From positions 17,546,001 to 17,610,000 of the forward strand of contig NC_043008.1 in the NCBI RefSeq assembly GCF_006345805.1: a DNA stretch of 64,000 nucleotides, in the 5' to 3' direction. A model generated the notes under the pieces. It was not told the origin of the DNA. It did no database searches and saw only the letters and a program-made list of their open reading frames with translations. Positions 1 to 7,377 of this stretch are shown here, one piece after another. Source of the stretch: Octopus sinensis (taxonomy: Eukaryota). Every line of letters begins with the position of its first letter. Within the stretch, counting starts at the first letter, position 1. The position numbers and the translations under genes were made by a program.

Positions 1-1269
1 CACATAAAAAATGGGTCTCGGGACTTTCTTTGCTTTGTGTGTGTGTTTTTGATTTTCTTGTAGGAGGGGAGTGGGTGGAATCACTGTTTGCCGGGGAGGG
101 TCGGGACTCCAAGGGTATGGGTGGTGTCGGGGTGGGTTGGGGCTTCGCACAGTTTTTCTTTTTCCTTCTTTTTCTCTTTGTTCCCCCTTCTTTCCACTCT
201 TGTTGCATCTCTTCTTCTGTCGTTTCCTTCTCTGTTTGTTTCTGTTTATTTTCTTCCTCTCCTGAGGCTTCCTCAACGCTTTCCTTTTCTTTTTCCTTTG
301 GTGGGGGAGGGCAGTAGGCTCTTATGTGCCCCCTTTGGCCACACTTGTAGCACCTGGGCGCCCTACCCTCCACCCACACTCTCATAATAATATTTCCAGT
401 TTTTATGCTGTCCGTAATCCTCTCTATAACATCCGCCTCCGTTTGAATGTTCATAACTAGTGTGGCACCTCTCACGCCTTCATTCTTCATAATGGCGTGG
501 AGGATGTCCACTTTATCTTCATTTCCTTTTATAACCGCAGCTGTTATTAATTCGCCTTCTAGGTGTGGAGGTATTCCTTCCACCCTAATTCTAGTTGTCC
601 GCCTATTCAGATACGAGGGTAACAAGTAAAACTTTTCAGTACTCACCACCTTGGCTGCTACATTCCTGGCTGCTTTTTCACTTTTAAATTGCACCGTTAT
701 GGTTCCGTATTGTAATCCTTTTGTCATGTACACAATTCCTCTCCTGTCTGCTGAGAGCCTCTTCAATTGCTTCCATGTTAATTACTTCCATCTTTCTCCC
801 TCCATTCATAAAAACTTTATATTTAATGGTTCTACGATGGAACCAGTCTTCGCGCCCTACTGGAGGCAGCAGCTCCACCTCTCCGTTTTCGTCCTCCTTC
901 ACAAACTCCTGGAGGCCCGTCAACTTAGCCAGGTCTATCTCTCTTTCCATTGACTTCTTCGTTACACCTGCGTAGGTGCCTTCCATCTTTTTCACCGCCA
1001 ACTCCTCCTCAGATGACGATACTTCCGTCGAAATTTCAGAGAAATTTCTCCCTTCCATCTCCTCCGTTTGATGGAGGCGGCTCATAATCGCCTCAGACCG
1101 AAAAACGGCCTCCCGAACCGAAAAAGTTTAACGCGCCGAACGAGCGAAACGCGAAACCGCGCCAACGCCGTTCAGAGTCTCCACAACAACAACCACGCTT
1201 TTTTTTTTTTCTTTTTTACCGAATTTTCAGGAGCCGAAAAAAACACAACCGACGTCAAACGAAGTGGTG
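1..1269 (-). mobile_element. ORF1-only non-LTR retroelement, array unit 1 (divergent subfamily; runs off the window start)
   Basis: The 5' leader (about 1090-1269) is nearly identical to units 2 and 3. The minus strand encodes a homologous but clearly diverged protein (TYAGVTKK, LLPSYLNRRTTRIRVEGIPP, RVWVEGRAPRCYKCGQRGHIRAYC at 311-352). Confidence 0.8.
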
Positions 1270-3013
1270 ATTTCTTTATTACCCACTAAGGGGCGACACA
1301 GAAGGGGACACCAAAAGACATGGGGACATAAAACATTATAATTAGACTTTATGAAAATGAATTGTTAAACGAAAAAATGATTAAATGAAAGCGATACCAA
1401 CGGCCCCGTCCGTCAGCATCACTTACCTGTCCTTTGTTTTTCATAGTCACTTGAATGTTCCTTGCCAATACGAACAAATTCCATATCCATTCTTACTCCG
1501 AAATACTCATCCATATTTTCCACGAATTCATCGCTCATTCTTATATCTTTCACCTCCCAATTCTCGCATTCACACATCACCATAAAGTCACTATGTTCTT
1601 CTTTTCAATCACAGCATACCTAGTCTCACAAACATCATACCATTTATACTCTTCCATTAGACTTTTAACTTCTTTCTGTTCAGTCATAGTACAAATGTAC
1701 GGCCTGATATCTATTTCAATCTCTGTGTGTGTGTATTCTTTTTTTTCTTTTGTTTTCTTGTTGGGGGGGAGCGGGTGGGTTCAATGTCTGCATGGATAGG
1801 GTGGGACTCAGAGGGCGTGGGTGGTTTTGGGGTGGATTGGAGTTCCATATTATTTTCTTTTCCACGTATTCTTCTCTTCCTCTTACTTCAGCAGCTTCCT
1901 TCCATTTCTGTGTATCTCTTCCTCTGTTTCCTTCTCCTCTGGTTTCTGCTTCTCTCTCTCTGGTTCGGGATCCATTTCTTTCCCTGGGGGAGGGCAGAAG
2001 GCTCTTATGTGACCCCTCAGGCCACACTTGTAACAACGTGGAGCCCTGCCCTCCACCCACACTCTCATGATCACTTCCCCAGTCTGATGCTTTCCGTCAG
2101 GTCCACCAGTACCTCGGTCTCTGCCTGTACGTTCAGCTCCACTGTTACGCCTCTCCAGCCCGGACTTAACCGAGGCATGGAGAATATCCACTTCGTCCTC
2201 GTGGCCGCTGATCACAGCCGCCACAATCCATTCTGCCTCCACGTTTGGTGGCACTCCCTCCACCCTTATTCGTTGTAATCTCCTGTTTAAATACGTAGGT
2301 AACAGTGTTACCTTTTCCGACTTCACCGCCTTCGCCGCCATCTTCCTCGCTGCAGATTCACTTTTAAAATGCACAACTACGGTCCCATACTTGGATCCTC
2401 GAGTCAGAAAATTATTTCCTCCTCAGTTCTTCGCAGGGCTTCCTCTATCCATTCCATGGTTACAACTTCTACCCTCTTCCTTTCGTTTGCGAACACCCTG
2501 TAAACAATGGTCCTCTTATCATACCATTCTTTTCTCCTGGGTGTCGGTGATAGTTCCACCTCACCGCTTTCCTTTTTCAGTGTTTATGGTAACTTGGTAG
2601 CTTGGCCAAGTCGACCCCTTCTCTTCCGCCTTCTTGGTTACACCGGCATAAGTATAACTCAGCTTCTTTTCCAATTTCCTTGCTGCCATTTCTAGCTCCT
2701 TCTCAGACGCAGACAAGTCTGATAAAGACTCGAAATCTCCAGCCTTTTCCTCCATCAGCTTCACTGCAATTGCCTGTTCCAGTTCCTCATCTGTCGTGGA
2801 CAAGTCTGTTAGAGACTCATAGTCCATTTCCTTCTGTCTGACAGACCGAAAACGGCCGCCAAAACAGAAAAAAGTTTAACGCGCTGAACGAGCGAAACGC
2901 GAAACCGCGTCAACGCCGTTCAGAATTTCCACAACAACAACCACGCCTTTTGTTCTTTTTTACCGAATTTTCAGGAGCCGAAAAAAACACAACCGACGTC
3001 AAACGAAGTGGTG
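1270..3013 (-). mobile_element. ORF1-only non-LTR retroelement (Tx1/L1-like ORF1, HAL1-like architecture), array unit 2, 1744 bp
   Basis: Minus strand starts CACCACTTCGTTTGACG and ends ...CCCCTTAGTGGGTAATAAAGAAAT. One frameshifted ORF fills most of the unit. No RT or endonuclease motifs lie between the ORF stop and the 3' tail (about 150 bp). Confidence 0.8.
1419..2827 (-). pseudogene. ORF1/Gag-like nucleic-acid-binding protein, about 465 aa when frameshifts are corrected
   Basis: ORF pieces 2561-2827, 1883-2374 and 1716-2060 join into MDYESLTD...KYGTVVVHFKSESAARKMAAK...LLPTYLNRRLQRIRVEGVPPNVEAEWIV...RVWVEGRAPRCYKCGLRGHIRAFC (CX2CX4HX4C, 1994-2035), then an acidic/Pro-rich linker and a C-terminal tail ending RTGK* (TGA 1419-1421). 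RRM-like segments followed by a knuckle resemble Tx1/L1-clade ORF1. The frameshifts may be assembly errors. Confidence 0.75.
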
Positions 3014-4746
3014 ATTTCTTTATTACCCACTAGGGGCGACACAGAAGGGGACACCAAAAGAATGGGGACATAGAACATATAATTAAACTTTATGAACATG
3101 AATTGTTAAACGAAAAAATGATTAAATGAAAGCGATACCAACGGCCCCGTCCGTCAGCATCACTTACCTGTCCTTTGTTTTTCATAGTCACTTGAATGTT
3201 CTTTGCCAATACGAACAAATTCCATATCCATTCTTACTCCGAAATACTCATCCATATTTTCCACGAATTAATCGCTCATTCTTATATCTTTCACCTCCCA
3301 ATTCTCGCATTCACACATCACCATTAAAGTCACCTATGTTCTTCTTTTCAATCACAGCATACCTAGTCTCACCAACATCATACCATTTATTACTTCCATT
3401 AGACTTTTAACTTCTTTCTGTTCAGTCATAGTACAAATGTACGGCCTGATATCGATTTCAATCTCTGTGTGTGTGTTATCTTTTTTTTCTTTTGTTTTCT
3501 GTTGGGGGGGAGCGGGTGGGTTCAATGTCTGCATGGATAGGGTGGGACTCAGAGGGCGTGGGTGGTTTTGGGGTGGATTGCAGTTCCATATTATTTTCTT
3601 TTCCACGTATTCTTCTCTTCCTCTTACTTCCAGCTTCCTTCCATTTCTGTGTATTCTCTTCCTCTGTTTCCTTCTCCTCTGGTTTCTGCTTCTCTCTCTC
3701 TGGTTCGGGATCCATTTCTTTCCCTGGGGGAGGGCAGAAGGCTCTTATGTGACCCCTCAGGCCACACTTGTAAAACGTGGAGCCCTGCCCTCCACCCACA
3801 CTCTCATGATCACTTCTCCCAGTCTGATGCTTTCGTCAGGTCCACCAGTACCTCGGTCTCTGCCTGTACGTTCAGCTCCACTGTTACGCCTCTCCAGCCC
3901 TCGGACTTAACCGAGGCATGGAGAATATCCACTTCGTCCTCGTGGCCGCTGATCACAGCCGCCACAATCCATTCTGCCTCCACGTTTGGTGGCACTCCCT
4001 CCACCCTTATTCGTGTAATCCTCCTGTTTAAATACGTACGGTAACAGTGTTACCTTTTCGACTTCACCGCCTTCGCTGCCATCTTCCTCGCTGCAGATTC
4101 ACTTTTAAAGTGCACAACTACGGTCCCGTACTTGGATCCTCGAGTCAGAAAATTTATTTCCTCCTCAGTTCTTCGCAGGGCTTCCTCTATCCATTCCATG
4201 GATACAACTTCTACCCTTCCTTTCGTTTGCGCACACCCTGTAAACAATGGTCCTCTTATCATACCATTTTTTCTCCTGGGTGTCGGTGATAGTTCCACCT
4301 CACCGCTTTCCTTTTTCATGTGTTTCTGGAAACTTGGTAGCTTGGCCAAGTCGACCCCTTTCTCTTCCGCTTCTTGGTTACACCGGCATAAGTATAACTC
4401 AGCTTCTTTTCCAATTTCCTTGCTGCCATTTCTAGCTCCTTCTCAGACAAGTCTGATAAAGACTCGAAAACTCCAGCCTTTTCCTCCAATCAGCTTCACT
4501 GCAATGGCTGTTCCAGTTCCTCATCTGTCGTGGACAAGTCTGTTAGAGACTCATAGTCCATTTCCTTCTGTCTGACAGACCGAAAACGGCCGCCAAAACA
4601 GAAAAAAGTTAACGCGCTGAACGAGCGAAACGCGAAACCGCGTCAACGCCGTTCAGAATTTCCACAACAACAACCACGCCTTTTGTTCTTTTTTACCGAA
4701 TTTTCAGGAGCCGAAAAAAACACAACCGACGTCAAACGAAGTGGTG
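3014..4746 (-). mobile_element. ORF1-only non-LTR retroelement, array unit 3, 1733 bp
   Basis: Near-identical direct repeat of unit 2, with the same junction sequence (GAAGTGGTG|ATTTCTTTATTACCCAC on +). Differences are mostly single-base indels. Confidence 0.8.
3160..4561 (-). pseudogene. ORF1/Gag-like protein, second near-identical copy (frameshifted)
   Basis: Same protein as 1419-2827 (ORF pieces 4050-4349, 3810-4004, 3476-3799, 3352-3606). Its frameshifts fall at different positions from those in unit 2. Confidence 0.72.
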
Positions 4747-4772
4747 ACGTTTCTGCCAGCTCGCTGCCTTAT
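4747..4772 (-). mobile_element. 5' head fragment of tRNA-derived SINE family B, directly joined to the array
   Basis: Reverse complement TAAGGCAGCGAGCTGGCAGAAACGT matches the start of the full SINE at 12597 (TAAGGCGGCGAGCTGGCAGAAACGTTAG) at 24 of 25 positions. Confidence 0.75.
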
Positions 4773-5228
4773 ATAAACTATTGACAATAAAAGCCATGGG
4801 ATATAAAATGATTTAAATTTTAAAAATGTAAAAGTTGCATAACTTTTAAAATTTGCTGGTGTCCCAAGGCACTCTGCCGGCCAACGAAGGGTTAAAATAA
4901 ACAAATATGCTAGACATTGAATGTAGTCGAAAAAAAAATTTTTTTTTTTTTGGTCACGGTTGGACAAGCTACTACTATTAAGATTACTTCTGTAGGAGCA
5001 ACCCAGGTGATTCTACAACAACATCCGGTTTTCTTAGCAGAATTAGAAGCTACGATATTTGTCACGACAAATATATTTCAAACAGCAGCAGCGAAAGGAA
5101 GAGCGAAGCTTTTACGTGGGTGGTTAATTAAATATATTCTTTACACGCTGGTTTTAGAATCAGTTCTTAACTTCCTGACAAGCAGTACACACCCAAGAGG
5201 CTTGAGACTCGTGAAAATATATAAAGAA

Positions 5229-5618
5229 ATGGAAAAGATTATCAAAATGTTTACATGGACTATTATTTTCTTGCTTTTCGTTAGCACACTTAGTTGGTAT
5301 ACGGTGAAAGCTGGTTTGGAACGTCGGTGTAACGATGAAACAATCAGAAAAAGTGCTGTGTCAAATAGCTACTGCGCCACCAGAATGCCCAACTTCTTGC
5401 GACTTGTCTGCAACCGGGAAGACTATGTTAAAATGGACGATATTTTATTTTACACAAATCGATGTCCTAAACCCAAACGCAGAAGACTCAATGGAGTTGT
5501 TATCAGTAAAAGGAAAGCGAAGTCGCACTTATCCAGAAAAACCAACTTTTGGTGTGGAATTGTATGTGAATGCTGTCATCACACTTGTAGTTTAGATGAA
5601 CTCTTAGCCTACTGCTGA
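5229..5618 (+). CDS. Molluscan insulin-related peptide precursor (MIP-type ILP), 129 aa, single coding exon
   Basis: Hydrophobic signal peptide (MEKIIKMFTWTIIFLLFVSTLSWYTVKA). B chain GLERRC...YC-x11-C. Basic cleavage sites KRRR, KRK, RK. A chain GIVCECC-x3-C-x8-C followed by TGA. The extra B-chain N-terminal Cys and extra A-chain Cys (VCECC) are the molluscan four-disulfide pattern. An alternative start lies at 5247. The track's upstream extension from 4917 is not supported. Confidence 0.93.
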   Translation: MEKIIKMFTWTIIFLLFVSTLSWYTVKAGLERRCNDETIRKSAVSNSYCATRMPNFLRLVCNREDYVKMDDILFYTNRCPKPKRRRLNGVVISKRKAKSHLSRKTNFWCGIVCECCHHTCSLDELLAYC

Positions 5619-7377
5619 GCAAATCCCAAAGGATTATCTAGGTCATTCACAGCTGCCTGACTGAATGACATGTATGTCTGTTTCTTTTACAACCACTTTC
5701 TTTTTTTATAATCAAAGACTTAATCTTGATTTTTAAACTTTTTATAATCCTATCAATACTGCTTCTTAGTATATTTACTTCAATCTGAAATTATATTATA
5801 TCTTGCATATTTTTATCAGTTCATCACTTTTAATGTTCAACCACATTTTAGACTTCTGATAAATCCTTTTAATTTCTTTTTCTATATATTTTACTTTATT
5901 TTCTCCTACTCACATATCGCCAACAGGCTGTAAACTTTTTTGAAGTATTAGTAAATATATCCACAAAAATAATTTCTTTATGCTTGTTCTTGAAAAAATG
6001 ATTTTACTAAACATTGTTCTTATTGTGTTTTGGTATGACAAAATTAAGAGCGAAAAACAAAGCCCACGAATGGTTAATTAATGATCTGCGGTCGAACTAC
6101 AGCCAATTTCGATTTTGCTCCTTAGCCATCCCATGGTCGATTAATAAAGTCCCACTAACACAGAATTCGACTATAGTCTTGCTAAAAATTGGTCGGACTT
6201 TGTGTTTATAGGAAATATTCTTATGAAAAAAGCCATGTAGATTCTGAGCTGCCATTTTATTTGAAATCCAGTAAAAACAAAATTTCGAACATAAGATGTG
6301 AAAGAATTTAACTTTCTTGAAATAGGAGGTTCTTTGAGTTGCATGTCTGGAGTAGGAAATTGAAGACTCCTGTATTACCAACGGAATCGTTTACTCTAAT
6401 AAACGATATAATTGTAAATGAACCCTGGAGTAGTTACGCCAGGTACAGTGCAACAGTACGCCCCCACCACAAAAAAAAAAGACAATATCAGATCATTTGA
6501 GTGTTCGACTGCCAGGAGTTGTCTCAGCAAAAAAGTGAGCTATATTTTATGTTAGACAAAATGCAATTGTTCGATGTGACCAATCATGGAGTCTCTCGAG
6601 AAAAAGCACTCAACATTCCGCACTCACAAAAATGTAGCTTTTGGAATTTCGATTGTACTTAAACCAAAGGGGAGATGGATAAGATCAAGAACAAAGATTT
6701 GCTTTCATATTACATCATACATGTACTCTGGGAAAAATAACAGGCGTGAATGAAAGCTTGCATAATTCAAATTATAAATTCCGCAAATGTTACCACAGGA
6801 AAAAGAAAATACCCCTGTCAAATCGGCAAAACTAAGTTTTATGCAAGAACCAACAAATCACCATCCCGCAATAATGCATGAGCACCCTGCAATTTACAAA
6901 CACCTCAATAACAACTTTTTATTTAAAGATCCTGGTCGTTAGTATGGAGATGGCGTCACTTTGGAGAAGTGAAGACAGATTAACTTTCAAGGGCGAACTC
7001 AGAACAATAATGAAAGAAAAATAATACCAGCCAACTGCTTGATTTACTATACGGTTTTCTAAAATTTGCGACCTCCTGCTACAGCTTAGAGAATACTCTA
7101 GACCTGTATTAATGTCTTAATCTGTTAAGTCATTTCTTAGGATTCTGCATTTAAATTCCTATGGCATCAATTTTATCAATTCCTCTGAAGTAGACTAAAT
7201 GTATCATGCATGTACTTATGATAAATACATTGAATTTCTCTTTTGTATTAATTTTATTTTCCTTGAAATTTTTTGTGCGAAATGTATCCAGCATTGTAAA
7301 TTAAGTTGCAGAGTTAGTAAGCAAACATCTTGAAGTTGAAACTCTGATTTCTGCTTTTTAGGCTTTAATATTTGTTT

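Follow-up and report, generated by a model that had tools for sequence, protein, structure and literature searches.

A ten-cysteine insulin-like gene of octopods and a candidate fifth disulfide across its connecting segment

The gene and its ten cysteines

The window analysed here is a stretch of 64,000 nucleotides of the Octopus sinensis genome (RefSeq assembly GCF_006345805.1, contig NC_043008.1, positions 17,546,001 to 17,610,000 of the forward strand), and it contains a complete single-exon coding sequence (CDS) for an insulin-like precursor with ten cysteines (5229..5618, plus strand). The assignment is based on the translated open reading frame (ORF), a Pfam match and the comparison with an orthologue. 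The translation runs from MEKIIKMFTW to LLAYC with no interruption over 129 codons and is followed by a TGA stop codon at 5616-5618. No in-frame ATG is present upstream of 5229 back to a stop before 4917, and the first ATG lies in a good start context with A at -3 and G at +4. The protein matches the Pfam Insulin family (PF00049) over residues 47-129 with a score of 28.1 bits (E=4.3e-6), the curated gathering cut-off of the family being 23 bits, and its last 20 residues align with the solved A chains of insulin, bombyxin, DILP5 and insulin-like growth factor (IGF). An exact-match look-up of the protein in the searched collection returned no record of it as a called gene. Additionally, no second insulin-like peptide (ILP) copy, the canonical cephalopod ILP included, was found elsewhere in the 64 kb window.

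The cysteines of the protein are found at residues 34, 49, 61, 79, 109, 113, 115, 116, 120 and 129. The six-cysteine core of the superfamily is made up of Cys49, Cys61, Cys115, Cys116, Cys120 and Cys129, which are spaced C-x11-C in the B domain and CC-x3-C-x8-C in the A domain. Molluscan insulin-related peptides (MIPs) are defined by a C-x-CC motif in the A chain together with a B-chain cysteine located 9-14 residues before CysB7 (PMC5996578), and the resulting eight-cysteine framework has also been described in PMC9221753. Both members of the MIP-specific pair are present in the window protein as Cys113, which completes the C-x-CC motif of the A chain, and Cys34, which is separated from CysB7 by 14 residues. 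Eight of the ten cysteines are thereby accommodated in the MIP framework, with the spacing C-x14-C-x11-C in the B domain and C-x-CC-x3-C-x8-C in the A domain.

The MIP-type count of eight cysteines in the mature domains is exceeded by two cysteines that lie in the linker. Cys79 is part of TNRCPKP and is found 18 residues past CysB19, and Cys109 is part of FWCGIV and lies one residue ahead of Gly1 of the A chain. Residues 62-78 (NREDYVKMDDILFYTNR), which connect Cys61 to Cys79, contain zero dibasic pairs, so Cys79 is not separable from the B chain at a classical cleavage site. The initial annotation of this DNA had described eight MIP-type cysteines plus one after the B chain and one before the A-chain core, and the translation confirms this count. 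It also bears out the associated details: TNRCPKP is followed by KRRR (residues 83-86), RK (residues 103-104) is followed by TNFWCGIVCECC, no dibasic site occurs between the last B-chain cysteine and the first extra one, and the usual CG after the B-chain cysteine is CA.

The domains of the precursor, all encoded on the plus strand, can be placed by inspection and alignment. A signal peptide is predicted for residues 1-28 (5229..5312; MEKIIKMFTWTIIFLLFVSTLSWYTVKA, followed by GLE) from the hydrophobic core formed by residues 8-22 and from V-K-A at positions -3 to -1, and the VKA/G junction aligns with LVIA/GLEH of the canonical cephalopod ILPs. The B domain (residues 29-82, 5313..5474), as judged from spacing and alignment, consists of the core with Cys34, Cys49 and Cys61 and of a 21-residue extension that ends in TNRCPKP and corresponds in the alignment to the N-terminal portion of the C-peptide in canonical ILPs. 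This domain includes the GCC codon of Ala50 (5376..5378), which was assigned to the Gly B8 position by the comparison of 48 ILPs described below, and the TGT codon of Cys79 (5463..5465), which belongs to a conserved C-P-x-P motif and is kept in three orthologues. The B/C junction is marked by KRRR (5475..5486), a candidate prohormone-convertase site by sequence motif. The connecting (C) peptide comprises residues 87-102 (5487..5534; LNGVVISKRKAKSHLS) and aligns with other molluscan ILPs through the conserved motif L-x-x-[IV]-[IV]-I-x-K-x-x-A-x-S-x-L, which it carries together with a basic cluster. It is followed by RK (5535..5540), whose motif makes it a weak candidate for cleavage between the C and A segments and which takes the place of the usual KR. 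The aligned A domain (residues 105-129, 5541..5615; TNFWCGIVCECCHHTCSLDELLAYC) has the pattern C-x-CC-x3-C-x8-C and stops at its last cysteine without a C-terminal tail, and the alignment places the TGT codon of Cys109 (5553..5555) one residue before Gly-Ile-Val.

The C-terminal half of the C-peptide contains the motif L-x-x-[IV]-[IV]-[IL]-x-K-x-x-A-x-S-Y/H-L-x-KR, which shows roughly the same degree of conservation as the B chain across molluscs from bivalves to cephalopods. Such conservation is unexpected for a discarded spacer. A helix is predicted for this region (5487-5534) at low confidence in both of the AlphaFold models described below.

Orthologues, constraint and origin of the gene

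The closest database match is a protein of equal length from O. bimaculoides (XP_014772597.1 / A0A0L8IEJ1; 84% identity, E=1e-70) that carries the automatic name 'molluscan insulin-related peptide 3-like'. All ten cysteines are kept, residues 106-129 are 100% identical between the two proteins, and the differences are concentrated in residues 40-52 and near the cleavage sites. An exact-match look-up of the O. bimaculoides protein, made to obtain its genomic context, gave no record. When 1.84 billion representative proteins were scanned exhaustively with HMMER, one further member was recovered from Argonauta hians (GAB1606112.1, 'hypothetical protein') that is about 36-40% identical and has its extra cysteines in DTVCPEP and YYWCGIVCECC. 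When the mature parts of the window and Argonauta proteins are compared, identity at positions other than cysteine is only 33%, yet 10 of 10 cysteines and the GIVCECC core are conserved. The reading frames are open at 123-129 codons in the three species. A profile search built on the three sequences found no further ten-cysteine members, and the gene has been found so far only in octopods, the genomes of decapodiforms lying outside the search. Databases already list the proteins of O. bimaculoides and A. hians under automatic names, and one paper includes XP_014772597.1 as 'ILP-3' with no remark on its cysteines; no description of a ten-cysteine molluscan ILP was found in the literature.

The distribution of the extra cysteines was determined in a set of 48 molluscan-type ILPs with complete B and A motifs. 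Cysteines between CysB19 and the A motif are present in 3 of the 48, namely the ten-cysteine proteins, with exactly two in each. The same three proteins differ from the others at the residue after CysB7, which is Ala in the two Octopus proteins, Thr in the Argonauta protein and Gly in all the rest (45 of 45); Gly B8 is conserved in the insulin family, though it is no formal criterion of membership. The residues before Gly-Ile-Val form WCGIV in the three ten-cysteine proteins and NW[S/T]GIV in the canonical cephalopod ILPs, and a cysteine is found at this position in no other ILP. Conservation of both cysteines is by itself suggestive of a structural role and not decisive, and their co-occurrence across the family is the stronger argument that this role is a paired one. 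The suggestion that the two cysteines represent a paired and conserved gain, and not decay, is supported by these comparisons, as both are retained in O. bimaculoides and in the divergent Argonauta protein and are absent from each of the 45 other ILPs.

The processing sites, by comparison, vary within this small group. The B/C junction reads KRRR in the window protein and KR-SK in O. bimaculoides, and no site is present in A. hians (EIKD). The C/A junction, which is KR in nearly every other ILP, is RK in both Octopus proteins and is again without a site in A. hians (SN). The basic run inside the loop is KRK in the window protein and KKK in the other two. Additionally, the window protein has K-M where the canonical ILP has an RR site behind its B chain, so that part of the ancestral C-peptide would now be an extension of the B chain. 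The features that all three proteins share are the cysteine pair bracketing a 29-residue loop and the motif I-x-K-x-K-A-K-S-x-L, which suggests that the conserved feature is the bracketing of the connecting segment by cysteines, not its processing. The B-extended two-chain product proposed in the initial annotation is therefore plausible in Octopus, where KRRR and RK are available, and does not extend to Argonauta, where both sites are missing and only the internal KKK is found.

A codon comparison of the window gene with its Argonauta counterpart gave a proportion of synonymous differences (pS) of 0.83, which is saturated, and a proportion of nonsynonymous differences (pN) of 0.36 over the whole protein. 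The A domain is the region of lowest pN (0.23). Given the saturation, these values are to be read only as a qualitative pN << pS. The ORF is intact in both genomes, and an unconstrained ORF could not stay open over such divergence, which excludes decay; the earlier preference for a gain 'rather than decay' is in agreement with a frame that stayed open despite saturated synonymous sites. These results show that the ten-cysteine gene is a real, selectively maintained insulin-like gene, and it is predicted to encode a functional secreted insulin-like peptide.

Octopods also possess canonical ILPs with eight cysteines, which are represented here by proteins from O. sinensis (P0055) and A. hians (P0002) and a fragment from O. 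bimaculoides (P0005), with a decapodiform counterpart from Sepia latimanus (P0056). The MIPs, including the canonical cephalopod ILPs (SjILP of Sepiella japonica, the S. latimanus ILP and the 'con-Ins Im1-like' proteins of O. sinensis and A. hians), have the same Signal-B-C-A precursor as the window protein, and the canonical cephalopod ILPs share with it the same eight cysteines, GIVCECC, ELLxYC and the C-peptide sequence IISKxKAKSxL (PMC9221753, PMC5996578). The identity of the window protein is 44% with the canonical ILP of O. sinensis and 44-47% with the octopod canonical ILPs. The cephalopod-specific stretches that it has in common with the O. sinensis protein are AGLExxCN[DE]ET, PNFLRL, IISKxKAKSxL and ELLxYC. 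The ten-cysteine proteins differ from the canonical ones by the two additional cysteines, by Ala or Thr in place of Gly B8 and by RK or nothing in place of the KR before the A chain. Their B/C site is shifted or absent, the C-terminal tail that begins with KDP is missing, the gene has no intron in the C-peptide, and it evolves about eight times faster.

The NCBI pipeline names endogenous ILPs of cephalopods and bivalves (P0002, P0055, P0004 and P0006) 'con-Ins Im1/Im2-like' after the venom insulins of cone snails. These names may mislead readers into taking the proteins for toxins.

The two types of gene also differ in structure and location. The canonical ILP gene spans about 95-100 kb in O. 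sinensis and A. hians, and in A. hians it contains a phase-1 intron of about 92.5 kb that lies in the C-peptide and splits a Gly codon (G/GA). This is the classical intron position of the insulin family. The ten-cysteine CDS has no intron in either the window or Argonauta, and the split Gly codon of the canonical gene aligns with Cys79. The ten-cysteine and canonical genes of Argonauta are located on separate chromosome-scale contigs (BAAFZT010000048.1 and BAAFZT010000015.1, respectively). An intronless CDS located apart from the canonical gene is the pattern expected after the dispersal of a processed copy or after precise loss of the intron, and the ten-cysteine gene probably arose in one of these two ways. 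A point against retroposition is that neither a poly(A) remnant nor a convincing target-site duplication was found around the gene, although the event would be old, so that the lack of such hallmarks is expected and uninformative. When the window was compared with 20 kb of the Argonauta locus for synteny and conserved non-coding sequence, only the ILP coding sequence matched.

The canonical locus of A. hians (L002 10001-104781) has a first coding exon of very small size, followed by another at about 11820-12062, the intron of about 92.5 kb and an exon for the A chain. This gene is unusually large for a hormone precursor of 150 residues, and its span in O. sinensis is similar (about 100 kb).

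One candidate for a target-site duplication was considered and rejected. The 11-nt direct repeat TGGTTAATTAA occurs at 5121-5131 and 6071-6081, 950 bp apart, so that its copies bracket the gene, and it is the sole retrocopy-like mark at the locus; a weaker second repeat is found about 27-30 nt upstream of each copy. It was judged to be a chance occurrence because several similar repeats of 10-14 nt are present in 2.3 kb of this AT-rich DNA and because the gene predates the split between Octopus and Argonauta.

A neighbour-joining tree of 41 ILPs recovered the ten-cysteine clade with 94% bootstrap support and the canonical cephalopod clade, including Sepia, with 98%. The bootstrap value for a ten-cysteine clade within the octopod canonical clade was 0%, and the tree puts the clade outside the group formed by the octopod and Sepia canonical ILPs. 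Either the duplication would predate the split between octopods and decapodiforms or the tree would be misled by long-branch effects. The distance between Octopus and Argonauta is 1.0-1.1 for the ten-cysteine proteins and 0.13 for the canonical ones, which corresponds to the roughly eightfold difference in rate, and the identity is 36-40% as compared with 82%. Over a stretch of 71 residues, the canonical ILP of O. sinensis shares 99% identity with that of O. bimaculoides. The ten-cysteine gene thus appears to be a dispersed and fast-evolving paralogue of the canonical cephalopod ILP, at least in incirrate octopods (Octopus and Argonauta). This fits the specialised paralogue that had been proposed, as a separate canonical eight-cysteine ILP is found in the same species and the ten-cysteine lineage is the faster of the two.

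The candidate fifth disulfide and its rivals

When a secreted protein gains cysteines in an even number, as is the case here, pairing is the favoured outcome. A bond between Cys79 and Cys109 that closes the connecting loop at its base is the most likely arrangement and seems fairly probable from the positions of the two residues and their distribution in the family. Such a bond would be a fifth disulfide on top of the four MIP disulfides, and it would act as a staple that fastens the beginning of the A domain, at residue A(-1), to the end of the lengthened B domain. CysB19 and A1 would then be connected by a closed path some 19 residues long, in a manner resembling IGF or a single-chain insulin. 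The KR(RR) and RK sites of Octopus lie inside the staple, and a C-peptide of 16-20 residues could be excised while the two chains stay tied; in Argonauta, where the sites are missing, the loop would probably be left intact or merely nicked at KKK. With the staple in place, the final topology would no longer depend on processing, and the staple may also offset the folding cost of losing Gly B8. In vertebrate insulin, L-residues at B8 impair the B7-A7 pairing and foldability (PMC8514764).

Several results weigh against this interpretation. The known ten-cysteine members number three, and the joint survival of both extra cysteines in Argonauta would have a chance probability of about 1/9 if they were average linker residues. 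AlphaFold was run on the full precursor with 9 sequences and on the mature part with 41 sequences, and both models are of low confidence, with a predicted local distance difference test score (pLDDT) of 53 for the former and 62 for the latter (predicted template modelling score, pTM, 0.43). The confidence of the full-length model is worst around both extra cysteines. The mature-part model, itself of low confidence, pairs residues 33-34 with residues 108-109 in a short beta-bridge that would place Cys109 near Cys34 and not near Cys79, and a Foldseek search of the PDB with the low-confidence model gave no meaningful match. Expression of the gene gains no support from the only published quantitative PCR of an octopus 'MIP3', which targets the canonical gene. 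The reverse primer of this assay, which was applied to the O. vulgaris gastric ganglion (PMC5736919), encodes NWSGIV and thus corresponds to the canonical ILP, and neither of its primers matches the window.

The beta-bridge of the mature-part model hints at a rearranged pairing, which we consider rather unlikely although it would still give five disulfides. The new cysteines would re-partner with the MIP-specific pair, for example as Cys34-Cys109 and Cys79-Cys113, and the N-terminal ends of both chains would adopt another fold. Cys109 and Cys113 are only four residues apart, so that either could reach Cys34, and the 18-residue extension of the B chain may be long enough to span most of a 5-kDa core. 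The two-residue strand pairing comes from the better of the two AlphaFold models, and even there the scores given above are low. Moreover, the spacing of Cys34 and Cys113 is unchanged, which suggests that the ancestral four bonds persist, and the new cysteines are placed symmetrically at both ends of the connecting segment.

The use of the peptide may be considered separately from its pairing. An externally deployed product, whether salivary or venomous, reproductive or egg-associated, and aimed at another organism or at conspecifics, would fit any pairing scheme. It would explain fast evolution on a fixed cysteine scaffold, as seen in the distances and identities between Octopus and Argonauta, and the differences between the two Octopus proteins are concentrated at the surface of the B domain, the A domain being identical. 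Endogenous peptides of other families have been recruited into cephalopod venoms (PMC13311285). However, literature searches on cephalopod venom and the posterior salivary gland turned up no insulin component, and fast evolution is equally expected of a young or relaxed retro-paralogue, and we regard external deployment as unlikely. The same low standing is given to the full combination in which the loop is locked by a lineage-specific disulfide, the closed IGF-like topology is reached regardless of convertase cutting, Gly B8 is dispensed with and the retro-paralogue, evolving about eight times faster, is used outside neuroendocrine signalling in saliva, venom or reproduction; as a whole this is improbable.

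Two surface-exposed cysteines on flexible segments could also bond in trans, in which case Cys79 and Cys109 would link two precursors or two mature molecules into a covalent dimer, or would join the peptide to another protein. There is no precedent for this in the searchable insulin literature, and a cysteine pair at the two ends of a loop is the classic intramolecular geometry, which makes an intermolecular bond very doubtful. The weakest alternative, a decaying copy or processed pseudogene in which the extra cysteines are random substitutions, draws on the intronless CDS, the repeats that adjoin the gene and the lack of a called-gene record for the exact protein, but it has hardly any probability left in the face of the frames intact over 123-129 codons in three species, the good start context and the conserved ten cysteines and GIVCECC core, and it is effectively refuted by the codon comparison.

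The proposed Cys79-Cys109 disulfide can be compared with other members of the superfamily. In the arthropod-type IGF of locusts (aIGF), ten cysteines are present and five disulfide bridges have been predicted (PMC8220825). The number of cysteines, the prediction of a fifth disulfide and membership of the insulin superfamily are what it has in common with the octopod protein. The locust protein is, however, an arthropod single chain in which four cysteines are added to a six-cysteine base, whereas the octopod protein adds two to the eight-cysteine MIP base, and positional homology of the extra cysteines is unlikely. The idea of a five-disulfide insulin therefore has a precedent, but one with another base pattern and from another phylum.

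IGFs and engineered single-chain insulins, which are found among the PDB matches, have the end of the B domain joined covalently to the start of the A domain by a short path. The CysB19-to-A1 path of IGF-1 and of active single-chain insulins is comparable to about 19 residues. The closure in these proteins is made by the peptide backbone, whereas in the octopod protein it would be made by a disulfide and would persist after excision of the C-peptide. The sequence similarity to the single-chain insulins of the PDB is confined to the A chain.

Rodent Ins1 is a retrogene without the C-peptide intron that goes back to a partially processed transcript of Ins2. The octopod gene resembles it as an insulin paralogue, functional in the case of Ins1, that lacks the conserved C-peptide intron and is located apart from the parent gene. 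Rodent Ins1 keeps the parental cysteine pattern and a near-identical sequence, however, and the octopod gene keeps neither; its retroposition is also putative. The venom insulins of cone snails, likened here by description only, are specialised and fast-evolving molluscan ILP paralogues as well, and they are not known to carry the ten-cysteine pattern.

Insulin folding is considered to lie 'at the edge of foldability', Gly B8 and its three core disulfides being constraints that are nearly absolute (PMC8514764). The octopod protein is a natural insulin that lacks Gly B8 and has been maintained under selection across a deep split among octopods, and it would, if the proposed structure is correct, also have a disulfide that brackets the C-peptide. 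It would represent a natural experiment in which extra cross-links are traded against backbone constraints, and it would bear on the question of whether the peptide linker of single-chain insulins could be substituted by a disulfide. The comparisons described above suggest that octopods hold at least two structurally distinct insulin ligands. This would matter for studies of the insulin pathway in octopus feeding, reproduction and senescence, which have so far considered only the canonical gene.

Flanking motifs and other features of the window

Motifs that may belong to the transcription unit are found on both sides of the gene. A pyrimidine-rich tract that ends in TTTTAG (5137..5157, plus strand) is a speculative splice acceptor for an exon of the 5' untranslated region, as judged by pattern match only. 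The first AATAAA past the stop codon (6143..6148, plus strand) is a candidate polyadenylation signal by motif match only, and a second is located at 6398-6403, so that the two motifs lie 0.5 and 0.8 kb past the stop codon.

The remainder of the window contains several repeats. A tandem array occupies positions 1-4750 and ends about 480 bp upstream of the ILP start codon. It is made up of about 2.7 copies of a unit of about 1.74 kb; the identity is 95-100% for copies 2 and 3 and no more than about 61-82% for copy 1. The ORFs of the unit (130-180 residues, on both strands) gave no Pfam match. An array of (TCA/ATC)n of 500 bp is found at 56291-56791 and is followed by trinucleotide arrays of ATC, AGT, AAT and ATT at 57058-58388, and these arrays yield long spurious ORFs on both strands at 56120-57079. 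A translated simple repeat was also encountered among the candidate insulins in the case of P0009 (577 residues, 7 matched stretches), which was rejected as an insulin for this reason. Lastly, a reverse-transcriptase fragment is located at 22420-22947 on the minus strand (Pfam RVT_1, E=7e-19) between long (TA)n arrays at 21172-21639 and 23146-25153, the latter of 2 kb, and it is probably part of a degraded retroelement of the type without long terminal repeats (non-LTR).

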